From sequence record MT708547.1: a stretch of 64,000 nt of DNA; one strand, given 5' to 3'. A program made the translations under genes and the position numbers. Positions 1,741 through 32,591 of the stretch are shown piece after piece. The notes under the pieces were generated by a model. It saw nothing but the letters and a program-made list of their open reading frames with translations, had not been told where the DNA came from and made no database searches. Within the stretch, counting starts at the first letter, position 1. The number at the start of each line of letters is the position of its first letter.

Positions 1741-2904
1741 ATGAAGAAAAGGAATTCGTGGAGTACTCCTGAAGAATATAGGAAGATTCAGTGTTATTTT
1801 GATACAATACACAAAGAAAAATCCAGTTCAGGAGTACGAAAAAACAGAAATAAAATTAATACTAAAAAGAAAGAACGTATATATTCTTTAGAACGCCATA
1901 CAAGAGAAGCTTAAACGGGAGATTATTATGAAAGTACAAATTCAGCACAGTATTGTTCAAGACATGTCAGTGGTTAAATTTAACAATCTTCATGATTTTT
2001 TTAGATGTATTGACTTTCTCGATAATTCATGTTTAGAATATGATATGATAAAATACAGTTCAGTTCTTGATACTGCCAGTATCAGAGTGAATGAATTGGT
2101 ACTACATAAATTTAGCAAACGTTTCGGGATTGGGAAATGATTATGTATGAAAAATTTATATCAACTAAAGAAATGCTTCAAAGGTTGATTGACGATAATG
2201 ACAAAGAAATTATAAGGTATTACACTGGAAAAAAAGTAAAAATTTCTGCTGAACTCCTTGAGGAACTCGAATTGGAATCAGATGATGATATTGTATGGAC
2301 TATATATGCAGTCACTGTATTCGATGATTGCCTATTTTTTGATGTAGAACACGGTGATGATGATTTACAAGATTTAGAAATAGATGATCTTATATTTCTT
2401 TGAGAATAAAAATGAATACAGAACAAGCTATTAGTACTATTGAAAATTTAAATAACACTTTAGGAATTCTTGAAAAAATTAAGTTAGATGTTGAATATCA
2501 AGTACAAAATTTATTTTTGAATAAGAAAGCATTATTCAAGGATGGCACGGAAGGATATATTGTCGAGTTGTTTTCTGAAAATGTAAACCTACCTTATGAT
2601 TTTCAATTTCTTGTTCGTTCAGAAGGTGGATACTTAGATTATATATATGAGGTAAAAGATTTTGTGCAATTCATCTAAAATAATTAAGCAGTACGAACAA
2701 TACGTAACTATGCTTGAAACCATGAATGCGGAATTAGAAGTTTCTGCATTTAATTCTGTACATAGATACTTTATAAATCGTCCAGTGTTATATAAAAACA
2801 ATGAATATAAAATTCAAAATGTATTCAGAGATGAAGAAAGTACTATAATTTTCCTACTGTATAATAATATATATGTGGATTATACTGAAGTAACGTTTAT
2901 TTAA
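1741..2904 (+). CDS. Run of short hypothetical ORFs (1741-1914 read by hand, 1928-2140, 2137-2403, 2400-2678, 2662-2904)
   Basis: Tightly packed or overlapping ORFs, several with SD-like AAGGA/GGAG. Confidence 0.55.
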
Positions 2905-3900: not shown

Positions 3901-3971
3901 TGTTAAAATAGAAATACAAATAGAAAAATAACATTTATCTAGATTCAGTAGTTGGGCTTGGGGATAAGAAA

Positions 3972-6348
3972 ATGAGACAATTTTATGAACACTGGAAAAT
4001 GTTATTTAATAGTACAGAGTTGTTGTACTGGAATAGATATTATTCCGGTTGTATCAATGAATTGTATAATCATTTTTTATATGAAGCTACTTCATCATTA
4101 AAAGGACAAACAGTTCAACACAACGTACTCGGCGAATGTAGAATTACAAGAGTTTATTCTTTTTATGATGATGAATTATTTTGTACAATATATTCGAATT
4201 TATACAGAATGGATGTAAAATTGCGAGATTTAATTTAATGAATTTATTAGAATGTATAAAATTTACTAAATTTTTAGATTCAGTGAATGATCGTATGTTT
4301 GAGGAATTTTGTGATAATACTGAATATTTAAATATAGTAATGGGTATTTTTCATAAACATTTAAATGGGTATATTGATGAACTGAATAAAAAACTAAAAA
4401 ACAGAGAACTTTTCGTGTATGGTTTAGGTTATTGTGTAATTTATGATGTTTATCGTTCGATACATGGTGAATTAAAATGTACAGTAACATTTGAAAATGA
4501 ATATCATAATGTCTATATGAAATACTCAAAACTTGTATGAATAAAATAAAATCACTTGATATTGCTTATACCCTATTTTATATCAAAGATCATATAGATG
4601 ACTCTTTTTACAAAGTTATAGTCGATTATACAGAGAATTTAATACAAGAACTTAACACAATACTTATAGGTAGTAGTTGTATTGTTAAACCATCTGGTGT
4701 TGAATTCAAAGCTACAATTGATTCAATATTGTTTAGTTCTATTTCTGGTTTAGTATATAAAGTAACTGAAAATACTAAATCATTTTATAGTTATCGTTAT
4801 GTTAATCCATTAAAAATTGAGTTCTTATGAAATCACTCAAAGAAGATATTAATTTCAAATTGTTATCAGTACTGAAAGAACATACTTTTAGTAACCCACT
4901 TTGTCAAGATTTACTTAATTCAATATATTATAATAAAATTACCAAATATGTTGATAATAAATGTTATTTTATTCATGACGAAGAAAAATTATACTCAACC
5001 ATAAATGGGTTTTTTGTATCAAAAAACGGTGATGTTTTATGTTATTTGTATCATAATAAAACATACAATTTTATAGAATTAAAGGATGTATATATTGAAT
5101 AGTATTCAGGATGATATAGAAAGGAGAATATACTTCATTATAGTGTGTTATAAAAGAAAATACACTACACAGTACTATAATTTCTGGAATGCAAGATTAA
5201 ATTTGGAAATTAAAAACATATTATACTACCAGAGGATATTGTAATGGATTCTTATTTAGATGAATTAATTATTGATTTACTAGTTTCTTCAGTACTATCA
5301 CGTCGCGGTGAACAAAAAGAACGCAAATACAATAAAGAAAAATTTGATGATTATTTGCGTGATTTTCTGGAAAGATTCAAATGAATCAACATCAAGATTA
5401 CAAATATCATAAGCTGCTTGATGAATTCACCGAAAACATAAAAATGTATGGGGTGCTAAAACAGATAGCAACAAAACATAAAACAGGAGACTATTTCAAT
5501 AAAAGATGTAATTCAATTATAAAGAGATTTGTTACAGAAAGTAATTTTATTATTAAAGGAAAATAATTTATGGATATTGATGATACGTATTTGTATAATC
5601 TTGAATTAGTGAGAGTTGGTGTATTATTGACCACTTATTATACTAACTACAAATGTATTAATTCTGTTATAAATTCTATACTTGATTCATGGGTATATTA
5701 TAGTTCCAGATTACTATAATGATTAATTTAAATTTAAGTTACAAAACACATAACTTCGAAAGTATAAAATTTGATGAATAAAATAAATGACGCATATCAT
5801 ACTTGGGAAATGCTTTTTGACTTAACTGATGATTTTTATCCAAGTAACTATTCAAATGTTTATTATGAAGTATATAAAAATTATTATTCAGAACTTAATA
5901 ATTATGTCAAAGGAACTAAAGTTGAACTTATATTATTATATTCAGTGAGTCCTTCAAAACTAGGAACTGTTAATTCAATAAATGTGACACCATTTGGATT
6001 ACACTTTGAAATAGAACTGTGTCATAATTCAGTAATCGTTTTCCGTGAATATTGTGAAATAAAAGAATGTTAATATGTGGGGTTATCATGAATTTAAAAA
6101 CTGATATAGAATATTTCAATTTACTTATGTCATTAGTAAATGAACAATTGGAGCACATGAATAATACTTATAAAAATACCAATGTATTAATAGATTCACA
6201 TAAAAAGAATTTATATGATGAAGAGGGAAATATTTTATTATTTGATATTTCGGATAAAGACTCTACATTAATGATAAGTGTTCAGTACAGTAACAGTTGG
6301 TTTGGTCATTTAAACTCGGAATATCATGATTTTGTGATCAAAAAATAA
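3972..6348 (+). CDS. Array of short hypothetical ORFs (3972-4238, 4181-4540, 4537-4830, 4827-5102, 5244-5384 by hand, 5381-5566, 5771-6073, 6067-6348)
   Basis: ORF track, overlapping start/stop codons; several share a helix then LKxxxV...G...I..I pattern. Confidence 0.55.
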
Positions 6349-18532: not shown

Positions 18533-19597
18533 ATGAAAGAAAAAGTTTATGTATATATTGGACGTTTCCAAATTCCACATATTGGTCATGAAGAAGTCCT
18601 CAAACATGCGATCAAAATTGCAGATCGTGTTATCATTCAGGTCGGTTCAAGTGAACTGGCTCGTGATCCAAAAAACCCATTCACGTTTGAAGAACGTAAG
18701 TCAGTACTAGAAGAAATTACAAAACGTGTAGCTCAAGATGAATGGAATAAAGGTCGAACTGTTAAAATCGATATTATGCCATTACATGATTATGTATATG
18801 ATAATAATGCATGGCTAAAAGAAGTACAGGATAATGTTAAAACATGTACTTCAAGTAATGATATTACTATTACCGGTTGTCGTAAAAATGGTGATACCAG
18901 TACTGAATATCTTAACTATTTTCCTCAATGGAAAAATGACTTCATTAACGAAGTACAAAGTAATGCAAAAGGTACTATTAGTAGTACTGAACTACGCGAA
19001 GCTTTTTTTGTCTCTGGTAAAGTTCCAACTGAATTTGTTTCAAAAGAAACAACAGAATTTCTAGAAAATTTTGTCAGTACTAAACCAGATGTATTCGATA
19101 ATCTTATTAAAGAATATGAATTCATTAATCGTTATATTGAACAAATGAAAGAAGCACTACCTTATGATATTCCTTTTATTTGTGGAGATTCAATTATCGT
19201 AGCTGCTGGGCATGTTTTATTGGGTCGTCGCAGAACTTTTCCGGGGAAAGGTCTTTTGTGCATTCCTGGTGGTTTTTTCCAAGCATGGGAAGACAAAGAC
19301 CAAGTAGATACTGCCATCCGAGAATTGAAAGAAGAAACTAAAATTGATGTACCAGAAAAAGTTCTTCGTGGTAATATTGTAAATGTACAAGATTTTACGG
19401 ATATTAATCGTAGCTTACGTTGGCGTATTCTAACTAAAGCAGTACTTATCCAGTTACCTGATACAACGTTACCAAAAGTTAAAGGAAGTGATGATCTAGA
19501 ATCTGCAAAATGGTATCCACTAAGTGACATAGAAAAATACCGAGATCAGTTCTTTGAGGATCATTATAGTGTACTTCAATCTATGCTAAAACTATAA
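18533..19597 (+). CDS. nadM: Bifunctional NMN adenylyltransferase / Nudix ADP-ribose pyrophosphatase (NadM-Nudix, NatV-like)
   Basis: GRFQIPHIGH (HxGH), NPFTFEER, ISSTELR; Nudix box PGGF...AIRELKEETK; GSDD. Confidence 0.92.
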   Translation: MKEKVYVYIGRFQIPHIGHEEVLKHAIKIADRVIIQVGSSELARDPKNPFTFEERKSVLEEITKRVAQDEWNKGRTVKIDIMPLHDYVYDNNAWLKEVQDNVKTCTSSNDITITGCRKNGDTSTEYLNYFPQWKNDFINEVQSNAKGTISSTELREAFFVSGKVPTEFVSKETTEFLENFVSTKPDVFDNLIKEYEFINRYIEQMKEALPYDIPFICGDSIIVAAGHVLLGRRRTFPGKGLLCIPGGFFQAWEDKDQVDTAIRELKEETKIDVPEKVLRGNIVNVQDFTDINRSLRWRILTKAVLIQLPDTTLPKVKGSDDLESAKWYPLSDIEKYRDQFFEDHYSVLQSMLKL

Positions 19598-20699: not shown

Positions 20700-22172
20700 A
20701 TGAAAAACGTAAATCCAAATGTAAACTTTATTCTAAATGCCGATTCATATAAAGTTGGTCATCGCAAAATGCTTCGCAAACATGTTGATGGTTATTACAG
20801 TACTATTGTACCTCGTAAAAGCTCTCCACATAGCAACCATGTAGTTGTGGCTGGTTTGCAATACACAATTAATACCTATATCAATATTCAGATTACCAAA
20901 GAAGATGTTGATGAAGCTGAAATTGAAATTCGTGAACAAGGTTCACGTTTTGACCGCACTATTTGGGACAAAATCGTCAATGAGTTTGGTGGTAAAGTTC
21001 CAGTAAAAATTAGTGCTATTAAAGAAGGTACAGTTGTTCCAGTTCAATCAGTAGTTTGTGTTGTTGAAGCTAAAGATGAGTTTGCATTTTTGGCTAGTTA
21101 TATTGAAACTTGTATTCAACGTGGTGTATGGTATAGCAGTACTGTAGCATCTGAATGTCGTGCAATGAAAAAAATTCTTGCTGATGTAATGCAACGTCAT
21201 GCTGGTCATAAGAATGTAGATTATCATTTCCACAACTTTGGAGATCGTAGTGCAACTTGTTTTGAACATGCATATGTAGCTGGTATGGCACATGCAATTA
21301 TGTTCAATGGTTCGGATAGTTTAACTTCAAATCGTTATATTAAAGCTCACTATAATACTACCAAAGCGTATCTGAGTTCAGTTGACGCTACTGAACATAG
21401 TGTTATGTGTAGTAATAGTGATGCTGAACATCGCAATGATTATGGTGCAGCAGTAATGGCGGTAGATCATTGGGAAGAACAAGTTACAATGTGGGAAGAA
21501 GATGGATTAGGTGTACCAGTAACTTCATGTGTTATTGATACTTATAATGATTATCGCTTTGTCCGTGACTTTATCGGTACTAAATTAAAAGACCGTATTG
21601 TTGAAATTGGAAAACGAGGTGGTCGCTTTGTTCTTCGTCCTGATTCACGAATTCCCAAAGAAATTTGTATTGATGTAATCGAAATTCTAATGGAAAAGTT
21701 TGGTTATACTATTAACGAACATGGTTACAAAGTACTACCACCATATATTGGAGTAATTCAAGGTGATGGTGTTAATTTCGATAGTATTCATGAAATTCTA
21801 GATATTCTTGATGAAAAGAAATTATCCCTTGAAAACATTGTATTTGGTTGTGGTACCAAATTGGTTAACCCTGAACGTGGTCGTGATCTTTATAGTTGGT
21901 CAATGAAAGGTACTGCACAACATGTCGAAGATGAACGTGAATGGCAAGACCTATTCAAAGATCCAGCAGGTGAACCAGGCAAACGTTCACATAAAGGGCG
22001 TGTAGTAACCTGGAAATGTAAAGTATCTGGTAAGATTTTTGTTGATCGTGATGATCTTGATAAAGTTAATCATTTCATTGAAAATCTACTTGTACCAATG
22101 TATGACTGCGGTAAAATTATGAATTTCAGTACTTTTGATGAAGTTCGTGAGCGTGCTAACGTAGGTATCTAA
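20700..22172 (+). CDS. nadV: Nicotinamide phosphoribosyltransferase (Nampt/NadV)
   Basis: ADSYK, FHNFGDR, ATEHSV, VIDTY, LRPDS, IQGDG, FGCG, KDP motifs. Confidence 0.9.
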   Translation: MKNVNPNVNFILNADSYKVGHRKMLRKHVDGYYSTIVPRKSSPHSNHVVVAGLQYTINTYINIQITKEDVDEAEIEIREQGSRFDRTIWDKIVNEFGGKVPVKISAIKEGTVVPVQSVVCVVEAKDEFAFLASYIETCIQRGVWYSSTVASECRAMKKILADVMQRHAGHKNVDYHFHNFGDRSATCFEHAYVAGMAHAIMFNGSDSLTSNRYIKAHYNTTKAYLSSVDATEHSVMCSNSDAEHRNDYGAAVMAVDHWEEQVTMWEEDGLGVPVTSCVIDTYNDYRFVRDFIGTKLKDRIVEIGKRGGRFVLRPDSRIPKEICIDVIEILMEKFGYTINEHGYKVLPPYIGVIQGDGVNFDSIHEILDILDEKKLSLENIVFGCGTKLVNPERGRDLYSWSMKGTAQHVEDEREWQDLFKDPAGEPGKRSHKGRVVTWKCKVSGKIFVDRDDLDKVNHFIENLLVPMYDCGKIMNFSTFDEVRERANVGI

Positions 22173-26931: not shown

Positions 26932-27897
26932 ATGGAGATCATATACATGTTTTTCAACCAAACTTTCGTTTTGTATCATGACAACGGTAATGTGGAAATT
27001 ACTGATGATTTATTAAAAACAGTACAGAAATATGGTGGCTCTGAAAAATTTCATAGTCTAATGAAATTTAATCTAGGTTCTTTTGAAGAACGAAAAAGAA
27101 AGTATTATCGCCCCAATGGATATTTTGATTATGAATTCACAAATCATATGGGCTTTTTTCTTTGTAATGAAAAAGGATTACTGATTTCTCCTGATTTATT
27201 TTATGGTGAATATGAAGTAATCTGGAATAAGTACTGGGAACAGAGAAATCATACTCGTACTATGCATTTCAAACATAATAGATCATGGGTTCATAAACAC
27301 AATAACACTCGTTATAAACATCCGCAAACAATGAATGCTCGCAGAGCATCATGTGCGGTACTAAAAGAAGAAGGTGAACCTGAATTTCGAGGTAAACGTA
27401 AGGTACGTTCTATTCCAACGTTGTGGGATGATAAAAAAACTCGTCACGGTACTGGATGGAAGTATAGTACAAAACGAAAACATCAATACAAATAATCCAA
27501 AAGGAGAACGTAAATGTTCTCCTTTTTCTATTGGACAATATCAATGTCAAAATATAAAAAGAAAATTTTATCAAAAATAATTCATACTGAATCACTGGAA
27601 GATGATAATTTGGATGATATTATTTCAGTACTATTACACTGGAAAGAACAATACCCAAATGAAGAATTACGTGTTGAATATGGTTCTTGTGGTTTAGATC
27701 CTTATGGTGGATATGATGAATATTATATTATCCGTGATTGTTTAGAAACTGATGAAGAATTTAATACAAGAGTTCAGTACGAAGAAGATAAATTAAGAAC
27801 TAAAGAGCAAAAAGAAATGGAACGTTTATTAAGATGTAAAACTTTAAACGAATCCAACAAAGAAAAGTTAATCAAATATATCGAGAAATATAAATGA
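26932..27897 (+). CDS. Two hypothetical proteins (26932-27495, 27514/27547-27897)
   Basis: ORF track; the first has a basic C-terminus RGKRKVRSIPTLWDD. Confidence 0.6.
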
Positions 27898-29053: not shown

Positions 29054-30850
29054 TGCGTAAAATTGATTATGTAGCATTTTTATTAAAGGATGGTACAGTA
29101 ATTGAAAAGCATATTATTCGTATGCCAGCGTATAATGAGAAGGGATGGTATAATAGTGTAGTTAGTATTGATGCATTCAACAATCGTGAGTCCGAAAGAT
29201 ATTATCAAATTAGATGTGTTAAAAAGAAACCACTTCTTGGTTTATTGTGTCATTTATATCGATTAACTGAATGGGAACGTGATACACAGTTATCAACTAA
29301 TCGTATGAAAAAATATGATCCTTCATATGAACATCCTTACAATTTAGTACCATGCATTGAGCATCAAAATGTGTTTGACTTTTATAAACACATCGGGTAT
29401 GATTATAAAAAGAAGCGATACATTTAAAGGTAAATTTAATGAAACTTTGTAAGCATTGTCAGAAACCAAAATTCAAACATCAACGTGAAACACTGAATTG
29501 TCCAAGTCCAACTCGTTCATTGGCTGCGAATTTTAATAGTACAACTGTATATGATGAATATGAATCTGATCCAGTACATTATGCTATTGCACAAGTACAA
29601 TTGAAAGCTGATATTGCTGAAATTACTGCTGGTCTTGATGAACTTCTTGCTAAAGGTGATATTAACGAACAGTCGTATAAAATGAATTTAGCAAATGCAA
29701 CTGCTAATCTTACTCGTATTGCTGAAAATAGTAAACGCGAAGAATTTGAACCTAATGCAGTACTGTCTGTTTCTTTTAACGATATGGTGTATTTTTATGA
29801 TGCACAATGGGAAGAAAATGCAGTACTAGAAGGTGAAAAAGCGGTAGAAGATTTATATTTCTCTGATAAATTCAAAGAATATCATGATGCTGGTATTATC
29901 CCAGTATTAGAAGTGTTAGATAATGAAAGTACTGAAAGTGTTAAAGTAATTTATAATGCAGAACGTGCTGAATTTATTTCTGATATTAGTCGTGATGAAC
30001 ATTTAAAAGAAAAAGATACAAAACAAGAAGAAGTATCTTTATCTGATTTGAATAATGATGATTTTGTACTTCCATTACACGATAAACAATGGGTACTAAA
30101 TACTATTCGCAAGAATTGTGATGATGAAGTTGACGATCTTGAATGTGCATTGAAAAGTTGTGATGGATCTATTGTTCTTGGTAAACCAGATACAGCAAAC
30201 GATGGAACTTATCTAATGTTTGGTATGAAAACCAATGATGGTTTCCTTGAAAATGATTACTTCCTTCTTGATAACATTTTGTTTAAAGAATGGCATGTAC
30301 TTAATGATTCAGGATTAATCGAAATTGGGACATTTGAAAGCCACATTGACATTGATGAAAGCAAAAATAAAGGCATTACTACTTTTATGTCTGAAGTAAT
30401 TGCACGTTCATTATTCAGTACTGAAGCATTGGATATCAAAAGTACTTCTGATTGTAAAGAATTCTTGAAATCAGAATACAATGTACAAAAAGCAAAACGA
30501 ATCAAGAAAGAAAAATGGGGTAAAATTGAGTACCGAATCTTTGAAGATGATAATGGTGAACAGTATACTATTGTCACTTACTGTGATAAGTTGATTTCAC
30601 ATTATCCATTTGCTTACAATGAGGATTATTAATGATCATCTATGCTGTTCAGGAAATTGATTTTTATACTGAAGAATACGACAATCAAAAAATTCGTAAA
30701 TTATTTTTAAATTTAGACGCTGCACTTAATTATGTAAAAACTACATATGATATTAAAATTACTAACGTTAATACATGTAAAACATATATAGAAAATGATG
30801 AAGAACGTGGAGAAGTTTCCGTTGGTATTTATGAAATGAGTGTGTTATAA
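29053..30850 (+). CDS. Three hypothetical proteins (29053-29427, 29439-30632 acidic, 30632-30850)
   Basis: ORF track, overlapping stop/start. Confidence 0.6.
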
Positions 30851-30872
30851 TTAAATAATTTTTAACAAACAA

Positions 30873-30991
30873 GAAAGTACTGTCACCGTGCATCTGGGTA
30901 AAATCAGTATAAGTCCGTAAAGCACAATGCCAATACTCAACTATCTCCCTACTCCTTGAGATCTACCAAAGTTGAGGGTGGTAGTACTTTC
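30873..30991 (+). ncRNA. Candidate structured RNA (three-way junction)
   Basis: P1 30873-87/30977-91 (15 bp, 2 G-U), P2 30888-91/30922-25, P3 30936-42/30970-76 plus 30943-47/30958-62; intergenic, GC-richer than flanks. Confidence 0.55.
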
Positions 30992-31001
30992 ACCTTTTTA
31001 G

Positions 31002-31906
31002 TTGAGAAATATTATGATTTTATTAATTATTACAGTACTGTTAGGATTTTTTAATTGTTTTATTTTTTTCAGAATTGAAAAGAAAGAAGGATATTGCTTT
31101 CATAGTACAAAAGATGGTAAATTAGTTTCAATGTTTAGTATAGAATCTCCATCAATTTGTAAATTCTTTATTCTTTTACAATTCATCCCGTTTGTTAATA
31201 TCGTTTTCGCACTTTTATATTTCGTAGATATTCTTAATGGACATTAATAATGAATATTAAAACAACAGCAGATAAGTACTGGTTCATTATGAACCACCCA
31301 AAGTTTGTAAATAAAAATTACATTGTACCAAAAATTGAAATTGAACCACATAATGTATGTCCACAAACCAACAGAATTGAACAGTATGAATATTTGAATA
31401 CAAAAGTTCAGTACTGGATTGAGTTTTATATCCCAGTACAAGAAGATGGAAAATGGGATATTGCACATGATTACAAACATGATTGTGGTGGTGATACAAT
31501 AGATGAAGCAATTGACTGCTTATACAATTCAGTACTAAAAGAATATGGAAATTATACACAAGAAGAATTAGACAAAAAAGAAGATGAAGTATATGATTAC
31601 AAAAAATTCAAGGTTGGTGGTGCAACAATGTCATATATTTTATCTAAAATTCATGAAGACCTGTTTGAATACGCAAATGATAAAATTGTAACAGATGAAG
31701 AAGCAGAACCCTATAATAACAACACAGTTGGTTATTATGAAAACAAAATTAAAGAATTAAAAGGAACTTTAAATTCATTAATCGAATTCAAAAGAAATTC
31801 ACCAAAAGAAATGCACAAAGTAATTGACAAAGACATAAAAAACGTAGAACATGACATTTTTGCGAATGAAATGAGTATTAAATTTATGGTGGATTTGGAT
31901 CTATGA
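31002..31906 (+). CDS. Small membrane protein (31002/31014-31247) and hypothetical protein (31250-31906)
   Basis: ORF track; two hydrophobic segments in the first. Confidence 0.55.
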
Positions 31907-32271
31907 ATAAAGATCTTACAAAATTAGTTGAAGACCTACGGAATATGCCGAAAATTGAACAAGTTGGGCCGTGTAAACGTTTTTTGGTTATTGCACGTGC
32001 ATTAGATAGAAAGGGTCGTGTACTCAGTACTAAAACTAATTCATACACACAAACACATCCAGTACAGAAGAAGTTTGCAGTTAGGGCTGGGCGGTGTGAA
32101 GCTGTATGGCTCCATGCAGAAATTCGTTGTTTGTTAGCTGCAAGAAAAGATGTTCATACGTTACTAATTGCCAGAATTAACAAAGAAGGTCTTCCTGTTC
32201 CAGCAAAGCCATGTTCTGTTTGTGAACTGGCTATAAAAGAATATGGTGTAAAAAGGGTGATTTATACATGA
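31903..32271 (+). CDS. Zinc-dependent cytidine/adenosine deaminase-fold protein
   Basis: HAEIRC and PCSVC motifs. Confidence 0.7.
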   Translation: MNKDLTKLVEDLRNMPKIEQVGPCKRFLVIARALDRKGRVLSTKTNSYTQTHPVQKKFAVRAGRCEAVWLHAEIRCLLAARKDVHTLLIARINKEGLPVPAKPCSVCELAIKEYGVKRVIYT

Positions 32272-32567: not shown

Positions 32568-32591
32568 AAAAGCACCCCAGCGGTGCTTTTT
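32568..32591 (+). terminator. Intrinsic terminator
   Basis: AAAAGCACC-ccagc-GGTGCTTTT followed by T. Confidence 0.75.

Follow-up and report, generated by a model that had tools for sequence, protein, structure and literature searches.

A covarying structured RNA with a near-invariant core in RaK2-like jumbo phages

Introduction

Bacteriophage T4 makes two small, stable structured RNAs, annotated in its genome record and known as species 1 and 2 (rnaC, 139 nucleotides (nt), and rnaD, 119 nt), within a longer transcript, from which they are then cut out. To our knowledge, their function is still unknown decades later. Here we describe a structured RNA of 119 nt from the Klebsiella jumbo phage Muenster (MT708547, Alcyoneusvirus, 347 kb), which resembles the T4 species in being a small structured RNA of similar size from a large virulent myovirus. 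It lies within a stretch of 64,000 nt of this genome, hereafter the window (window coordinate = record coordinate minus 62,000), and its parts are listed in Table 1. The T4 RNAs sit in a tRNA cluster, whereas the RNA described here lies among nucleotide-metabolism genes, with no tRNA genes in the window.

Three other systems invite comparison. In three-way-junction riboswitches of the purine and thiamine pyrophosphate (TPP) type, too, the 5' and 3' ends pair to a closing P1 helix, the arms covary, the junction is invariant and metabolic genes follow. In the RNA described here, however, P1 has 14-15 base pairs (bp), there is no conserved expression platform, the downstream genes vary and no Rfam model matches. 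RNase III stalks, such as the precursor stems of rRNA and the sites in T7 early mRNA, are likewise long-range helices formed by flanking sequences, with about two helical turns (here, if P1 and P3 stack) and an internal loop, but they carry no conserved 60-nt core. The put RNAs of phage HK022 and the EAR RNAs, which act in cis in processive antitermination, are structured RNAs in long operons (of a phage, in the case of HK022) that act independently of their neighbours. This likeness is an analogy only; no sequence relation, promoter-proximal placement or downstream terminator logic was seen for our RNA.

A collection of 8,495 unnamed 'DNAVirus_X' motifs from IMG/VR has been published (PMC10690425). 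It follows the same discovery logic and draws on the same data source as the present work; jumbo phages, Klebsiella and deaminase do not appear in its main text. With about 12 instances in IMG/VR, our RNA may be among these candidates.

RaK2-group jumbo phages are therapeutic candidates for use against Klebsiella, E. coli, Salmonella and pathogens of plants, although over half of their genome has no explanation. The core of the RNA has hardly changed in sequence, whereas the proteins encoded next to it have diverged to 35-40% identity. An RNA with a core under such constraint usually has a precise partner or ligand. If the partner were found, host takeover by the phage, or its control of nucleotide supply, would gain a new RNA component. 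The family is small, compact and easily tested at the bench.

Results and Discussion

The element is a strand-specific RNA with strong covariation

To assess folding, the energy of the element was compared with that of 200 shuffled sequences. On the plus strand it folds with -33.6 kcal/mol, compared with -21.7 +/- 3.1 kcal/mol for the shuffles (z -3.8), none of which folded as well, and the minus strand reached a z of only -1.5 against its own shuffles. A covariance model (CM), R1, built from four sequences, scored the Muenster element at 173 bits on the plus strand and at 36 bits on the minus strand. G-U pairs, in both orientations, occur on the plus strand only. Because of these G-U pairs and the asymmetry of the two scores, we assign the RNA to the gene strand. 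A previous reading of this DNA, made from the sequence alone, had proposed a compact structured RNA on the plus strand, with G-U pairs in P1 that work only there, and it was correct in this. The folding energy, which it had named as a test, is better than that of the shuffles.

Pairing statistics were obtained from a model-fitted alignment (A8) of 18 distinct sequences, which leans towards the model. As controls, the 3' partner was slid by 1-3 columns, or the columns were shuffled (500 times). Standard pairs were found in 90.6% of the cells, compared with 40-47% in the slid controls and 69% in the column shuffles, none of which reached the observed value, and 26 of the 34 pairs had changed on both sides. 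The covariation among homologues on which the sequence-only reading depended is thus present. Relatives give support beyond chance to the small hairpin P2a, described below, and to the two helices P1, with compensatory changes in 11 of its 15 pairs and 93.6% of the cells paired, and P3, where all seven pairs have compensatory changes (94.2% paired; for example, CUCAACU/AGUUGAG versus UCAGGGU/ACCCUGG). A structure-blind cross-check with MAFFT and RNAalifold on 11 sequences independently recovered P1, its 3-bp GCC/GGC extension, the small hairpin P2a and P3, again with compensatory changes; the first pair of the extension is G-C, G-U or A-U. Moreover, P1 was the outermost helix in the minimum-energy folds of all 18 single sequences, with a length of 14-15 bp. 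Both the long P1 around a branched core and P3 had been drawn correctly from the sequence. In our view the element is almost certainly a real, functional structured RNA. It is a strand-specific RNA family with strong covariation, a fixed position and a very stable terminal helix.

These results also bear on the question of whether the repeat in P1 is a signal at the DNA level (for a protein that reads AGTACT, or as an origin) or a chance palindrome. The two AGTACT sites noticed from the sequence are indeed present in P1 of the Muenster group (30876-30881 and 30983-30988), and the word is enriched tenfold genome-wide: 152 copies were found in the 64 kb versus 14.9 expected, a number reached by none of 100 shuffles. 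The two sites reflect this excess and are not a feature of the RNA. P1 is not generally built from them, since half of the members form this helix from sequences that lack AGTACT (GAGAAAUAC paired with GUAUUUCU). In addition, the compensatory changes keep RNA pairing and not sequence. A DNA-level signal is largely refuted by the strand-specific G-U pairs and the far lower minus-strand score of the CM, and we regard it as scarcely credible.

A stable terminal helix encloses a near-invariant core

In most relatives, P1 consists of 11 bp, a 2x1 internal loop (AA opposite G) and 3 bp (GCC/GGC). In Muenster the internal loop is closed, which results in 15 uninterrupted pairs. The 3' strand of P3 runs straight into that of P1, so the two helices are able to stack, giving about 21 bp. 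The core comprises about 60 nt, which are mostly unpaired and near-invariant: CCGUGC, a hairpin with an A-rich hexaloop, UAUAAGNCCGU, a short variable stretch, A(A/G)UAC, CCUACUC and CUACCAA. Several further tertiary pairings between invariant blocks are conceivable (GUG with the three UAC sites, AGUA with UACU, and UGG with CCA), in columns that are themselves invariant. The core is near-invariant while the helices vary freely, which argues for a specific tertiary fold or a partner.

All pairings listed in the sequence-only reading can be located in Muenster: P1, GTGC/GCAC (30888-30891 with 30922-30925), CTG/CAG (30894-30896 with 30905-30907), P3, and ATCTC/GAGAT (30943-30947 with 30958-30962). 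Their fate in the relatives differs. The CTG/CAG hairpin is real and conserved, although it has 4 bp rather than three (CUGG/UCAG); it is paired in 95.6-98% of the cells, and a change from G-C to G-U still pairs. The apical stem of P3, ATCTC/GAGAT, is kept only loosely, with 84.5% of the cells paired and many gaps. By contrast, two proposals were not upheld. The GTGC/GCAC helix, which was to close P2, is paired in 72% of the cells, has no compensatory changes and is broken at two positions in 9-10 of the 18 sequences. It also competes with a possible mini-hairpin at 30922..30930, which reads CUC-AUA-GAG in Munch. The pseudoknot between GGTA and TACC is paired in 58.8%, shows no covariation, and its inner pairs are broken in 12-14 of 17 sequences.

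Coding potential was also considered and rejected. No open reading frame (ORF) of at least 40 amino acids (aa) lies over the element on the plus strand, and a frame starting with GUG stops after 10 codons in Muenster and is shifted in relatives by 1-nt insertions or deletions.

The RNA matches no family in Rfam

In a search with Rfam 15 (4227 models), no match was found in the whole window at gathering thresholds. When the region 30600-31300 was searched at E values up to 10, four chance matches appeared, none of them over the RNA on the plus strand. ARAGORN detected no tRNA genes in the window, and no Rfam tRNA model matched, in agreement with the sequence-only reading, which had recognized no tRNA or riboswitch. 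A tRNA-like NCCA end after P1, seen in Muenster (ACC) and Hallingskeid, was discarded, because it is not conserved; other tails read GCC, GCU, CCC or UUUU.

Kinship with T4 was tested with the CM with filters switched off. Nothing was found at rnaC or rnaD, and the best match elsewhere in the T4 tRNA region reached 13.5 bits. The length of 119 nt shared with rnaD is thus a coincidence. An RNA of a type III toxin-antitoxin system, like ToxI, was looked for as well, but the element is a single unit, present in one copy per carrier genome, with no visible internal repeat. Nor was it called in a scan for intrinsic terminators: the 'loop' would be about 90 nt, and P1 is A/U-rich.

Small ribozymes abound in phages, and a self-cleaving ribozyme of a new class, acting on the operon transcript to process it, would agree with a compact junction of several helices that lies between genes of a phage and has invariant nucleotides. 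However, the models for hammerhead, twister, twister-sister, pistol, hatchet and hepatitis delta virus ribozymes gave no match at E values up to 10, and no cleavage site is marked in the sequence. Given the low prior as well, we consider a ribozyme very improbable.

No published description of the RNA was found in the literature searched. By comparison with Rfam and that literature it is a new RNA family, specific to RaK2-like jumbo phages, and it may be among the DNAVirus_X candidates.

The family is confined to RaK2-like jumbo phages

Window positions 30600-31300 match Muenster with 100% identity, and RaK2, K64-1 and other isolates of Alcyoneusvirus with 96-99% (blastn, phage records). In the Erwinia phage Hallingskeid, the locus is syntenic, and of a 701-base query blastn aligned only bases 273-397, which correspond to the RNA, at 73.8% identity. 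The adjacent 218-aa proteins of the two phages are only 36% identical. The restriction of the alignment to the RNA, next to a protein so diverged, indicates selection on the RNA itself.

With R1, scores of 51-113 bits were obtained in 17 further distinct lineages. Full-length matches lie in the equivalent gap in Munch, XbC2, pEa_SNUABM_50, fHe-Yen9-04, fENko-Kae01, EJP2 and Kaldavass. The carriers are RaK2-like jumbo phages (Alcyoneusvirus, the Munch group, EJP2, Eneladusvirus, GAP32, CBB, XbC2 and metagenome contigs of about 350 kb), and their hosts are Klebsiella, Salmonella, Erwinia, Yersinia, Pectobacterium, Cronobacter and Xanthomonas. A scan of IMG/VR with a motif pattern yielded 12 true instances, all but two on contigs of 346-378 kb, and metagenomes contributed six more, three of which are new lineages. 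Five of the IMG/VR pattern matches and most of those from metagenomes were G+C-rich chance matches and were removed by the CM. Whole-genome CM searches revealed exactly one copy per carrier genome, including Muenster.

In the same type of search, the RNA was absent from 121Q, G17, Turkey5, CMSTMSU, PA5oct and Vibrio phage 11895-B1. In Shewanella phage 1/4, the locus around the homologue of the 218-aa protein contained only simple hairpins when searched with CM filters off. A stricter pattern with about 23.5 specified bases had no match in 185,579 bacterial and archaeal species (one genome each), and a bacterial origin is therefore rejected. Taken together, the CM, pattern and bacterial/archaeal genome searches show that the family is confined to RaK2-like jumbo phages.

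Around 35 phage records carry the RNA, as judged by blastn with three family members, and it is annotated as an RNA in none of them. All but two leave it without any annotation; in those two, both of Salmonella phages, it is overlain by a coding sequence for a 'hypothetical protein' (7t3, MK773491, 142149-142265; PHA46, PP191103, 135403-135519), which is probably a false gene call.

Two of the phages that lack the RNA, 121Q and G17, have at the equivalent spot a plain hairpin of 8 bp, CAGUACUGC and GCAGUACU around an 8-nt loop, followed by UUUUUAAUUGGAG; in Turkey5, nothing was found there. Judging from its sequence, this hairpin may be a P1 that remained after loss of the core, with uncertain homology because AGTACT hairpins are common in these genomes.

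We also compared phyletic profiles across eight whole genomes, of which six carry the RNA and two lack it. Six ORFs share the distribution of the RNA, among them genes for NAD salvage and a peptidyl-tRNA hydrolase (Table 1); the other three encode proteins of unknown function, and all six are absent from 121Q and Turkey5. The two RNA-less genomes in this profile are close relatives and represent a single loss branch, which makes the co-distribution a lead only.

The RNA keeps its position while its neighbours change

The RNA occupies the same intergenic gap in every lineage, always on the gene strand and upstream of a cluster encoding deoxycytidine monophosphate (dCMP) deaminase and NrdD. In Muenster the locus is a densely packed run of plus-strand genes, and the RNA fills part of a 163-nt gap between a 72-aa ORF and the gene for a 77-aa membrane protein. 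In a terminator scan, strong terminator-like hairpins at 27500-27525 and 32568-32590 bracket this gene block and probably delimit its transcription unit.

The upstream stop codon is located 0-12 nt before P1 in most lineages and 22-23 nt before it in Muenster and Hallingskeid, and the following start codon lies 12-25 nt past P1 in all lineages. The gap is so tight that neither a terminator of the RNA's own nor an expression platform fits, nor, in most lineages, a promoter. In Muenster, the last part of the upstream ORF contains a sigma-70-like promoter with an extended -10 element (TTGGTA-18-TG-TATAAT, 30822-30851), some 15 nt ahead of the RNA. The other lineages do not share it, and a promoter belonging to the RNA was rejected.

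In five lineages (two IMG/VR jumbo-phage contigs, pEa_SNUABM_50, fHe-Yen9-04 and CBB), the homologue of the 218-aa gene comes immediately after the RNA, which is likely the ancestral arrangement. A small gene is inserted after the RNA in Muenster, Hallingskeid and Munch, and a methyltransferase gene in XbC2 and Kaldavass. In the Klebsiella phage RCIP0023, two ORFs (154 and 81 aa) are annotated on an insertion of about 820 nt (locus 900-1722), whose start coincides with the 3' end of the RNA and which ends just ahead of the TAGTTGAG leader of the membrane-protein gene. The 3' boundary of the RNA is hence also an insertion boundary. Upstream, the neighbour is a 72-aa ORF, a methylase or a membrane protein, depending on the lineage. 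Both neighbours change between lineages while the RNA persists, which speaks for an autonomous module.

These arrangements bear on the regulatory fold that had been proposed from the sequence. The octamer TAGTTGAG is present at 30999-31006 as described, and it was thought to take part in an alternative, terminator-like fold. This fold exists in the Muenster group only: in RCIP0023 the octamer lies about 820 nt from the RNA, and elsewhere it is absent. Because it moves with the gene in RCIP0023, the octamer belongs to the leader of the membrane gene and not to the RNA. A switch ahead of the membrane gene is not supported either, since this gene is a lineage-specific insert and a P1 of 14-15 bp is too stable for the proposed switch. 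The RNA may be an attenuator of another design.

The main rival to an autonomous RNA is a cis-acting, riboswitch-like sensor that controls read-through or translation of the genes for the 218-aa protein, dCMP deaminase, thymidylate kinase and NrdD in response to a putative small-molecule ligand. The conservation of the RNA is aptamer-like, with an invariant junction and covarying peripheral helices, and in all lineages it stands at the same place, before the dCMP deaminase/Tmk/NrdD cluster. A U/A-rich tract follows P1, and 121Q and G17 have a plain hairpin with a U-run at this spot, which in G17 is annotated as a terminator. However, no conserved competing helix, and hence no expression platform, was found in the 12-25 nt between P1 and the start codon, and only seven of the 18 sequences have at least five U in the 8 nt after P1. 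P1 is far stabler than the P1 helices of switches, no known riboswitch family matches, and several lineages have retained the RNA despite unrelated genes inserted right downstream of it. We therefore consider a sensor unlikely. A more specific version, in which the core is an aptamer of a new class that senses a metabolite of the nucleotide pool or of the infection state and tunes the operon for deoxynucleotide supply (dCMP deaminase, thymidylate kinase and anaerobic ribonucleotide reductase), is doubtful. If true, it would be a riboswitch specific to phages, and its read-out would be unconventional: the ligand might, for instance, govern processing or termination at the long P1.

A purely structural intercistronic element, i.e., a partial terminator, an RNase III or RNase E site or a stabilizer of 3' ends whose core has no further function, would explain why the intercistronic gap is filled exactly and why a simple hairpin with a U-run suffices at the same place in 121Q and G17. 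The P1-P3 stack of about 21 bp with an internal loop points in the same direction, as T7 RNase III sites have such a stack. Yet a helix alone would do for this purpose, and here about 60 unpaired nt are near-invariant across the host range whereas the helices vary freely. We thus rate a structural element as unlikely too, and slightly more so than a sensor.

A trans-acting RNA is the tentatively favoured interpretation

From the sequence comparisons, we tentatively favour an autonomous, trans-acting RNA that would be cut from the operon transcript and work through its invariant core, without holding this to be probable. In this scheme, the RNA would be transcribed within a long early or middle operon RNA. 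The module would be released from it, or would at least fold alone, and the P1/P3 stack would serve as a stalk for processing and protection, analogous to the RNase III stalks of rRNA and T7 mRNAs. Indeed, the predicted geometry is compatible with such a stalk, P1 (11+3 bp) running into P3 (7 bp) on the 3' strand. The module could then act in trans, with the invariant core as a docking surface for a conserved protein or RNA of the host or the phage. With 14-15 bp, P1 is too long for a P1-based switch and fits stable or processed RNAs. Among public runs, examined as assembled contigs, the one recorded as RNA is a wastewater metatranscriptome, in which the sole contig on a 1-kb stretch (232 nt) covers 30844-31057 and is centred on the RNA. 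We regard it as a weak hint of expression and not as evidence. A published transcriptome study deals with PA5oct, a phage that lacks the RNA.

Several points weigh against a trans-acting RNA. The metatranscriptome contig has a depth of 2.4, possibly derives from DNA, and extends 66 nt beyond P1. Cleavage by RNase III is conjecture. A complement of CCUACUC occurs in the 64-kb window only on the RNA's own opposite strand, so that no target-like site was found there. The position is strictly syntenic, always before nucleotide-metabolism genes, which a role in cis fits equally well. Finally, as long as the RNA is part of the mRNA, ribosomes that reach a stop codon 6-22 nt upstream would open the lower end of P1.

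Table 1. Coordinates of the RNA, its parts and associated features (window positions unless another record or locus is given)
Feature	Position	Strand	Remark
Whole structured RNA, 119 nt	30873..30991	+	Terminal helix P1 around a branched, highly conserved core
P1, 5' strand	30873..30887	+	Pairs with 30977-30991; 15 bp including G-U and U-G
P1, 3' strand	30977..30991	+	Continues directly from the P3 3' strand
CCGUGC, junction entry	30886..30891	+	Invariant in every sequence of alignment A6
P2a hairpin, 4 bp + 6-nt A-rich loop	30894..30907	+	CUGG/UCAG here, CUGG/CCAG in most relatives
Single-stranded block UAUAAGNCCGU	30908..30918	+	Conserved; A6 conservation line U.UaAG.CCGU
Possible GC-loop-GC mini-hairpin	30922..30930	+	From alignment and single-sequence folds; weak
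P3, 5' strand	30936..30942	+	7/7 pairs changed on both sides
P3, 3' strand	30970..30976	+	Partner of 30936..30942
CCUACUC, apical part of P3	30948..30954	+	Invariant in 18/18 sequences
CUACCAA, 3' side of P3 arm	30963..30969	+	CC invariant; ACCA kept except in Kaldavass (ACCAG)
U/A-rich spacer and ribosome-binding site of next gene	30992..31013	+	P1-to-start distance 12-25 nt in all lineages
72-aa ORF upstream	30632..30850	+	Stop codon 22 nt ahead of P1; upstream genes vary by lineage
77-aa membrane protein gene	31014-31247	+	Next gene after the RNA in Muenster
218-aa acidic protein (phrog_16370)	31250..31906	+	Directly after the RNA in five lineages
dCMP deaminase gene	31903-32271	+	Next after the 218-aa gene; NrdD farther downstream
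NMNAT-Nudix and NAMPT genes (NAD salvage)	18533-19597 and 20700-22172		Co-distributed with the RNA
PTH2-type peptidyl-tRNA hydrolase	Muenster record 286982-287401		Co-distributed with the RNA
Plain hairpin CAGTACTGC / GCAGTACT, 8-nt loop, then TTTTTAATTGGAG	121Q locus 3951-3995; G17 locus 2452-2496		G17's annotated terminator

The adjacent 218-aa protein and other neighbours

The protein encoded by the 218-aa gene was analyzed for a possible connection to the RNA. It has no sequence match in Pfam or the PDB and was assigned to phrog_16370. Its N-terminal 115 residues were modelled as an alpha-beta-beta-beta-alpha domain (pLDDT 92), which is followed by a C-terminal helical hairpin. A fold search with the N-terminal domain, independent of Foldseek, returned T7 Gp1.2, an inhibitor of dGTPase, as the best match (Z 5.8). 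About 40 of the 50 best chains were double-stranded RNA-binding domains (dsRBDs; Z 4.3-5.6), and all scores are middling, below 6. The invariant residues include H16, C37, H73, D78 and G80-G81.

From this model, the RNA might be an operator through which the 218-aa protein, by its dsRBD-like N-terminal domain, regulates its own synthesis; the predominance of dsRBDs in the fold search and the five lineages in which the RNA directly precedes the gene would agree with this. However, the protein is strongly acidic (net charge -15 overall and -10 in the N-terminal domain). At the start of helix 2, where dsRBDs carry a basic KKxAK, it has DT(W/I)EEA, and the top match, Gp1.2, is itself an acidic enzyme inhibitor. 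Homologues exist without the RNA in 121Q, G17, Turkey5 and the Vibrio and Shewanella phages, and in four lineages other genes lie between the RNA and the 218-aa gene. We consider an operator improbable and have not adopted the protein as the partner of the RNA, since it is very acidic and occurs without it. A role as an inhibitor like Gp1.2 would fit a gene next to that for dCMP deaminase.

A linkage to tyrosyl-tRNA synthetase was also considered. Its gene lies 1-3 kb upstream of the RNA in XbC2 (665-1933), Kaldavass (1-1240) and the Eneladusvirus members fHe-Yen9-04 (455-1720) and pEa_SNUABM_50 (1190-2452; all locus coordinates). The 64-kb Muenster window contains no such gene, and the linkage was rejected.

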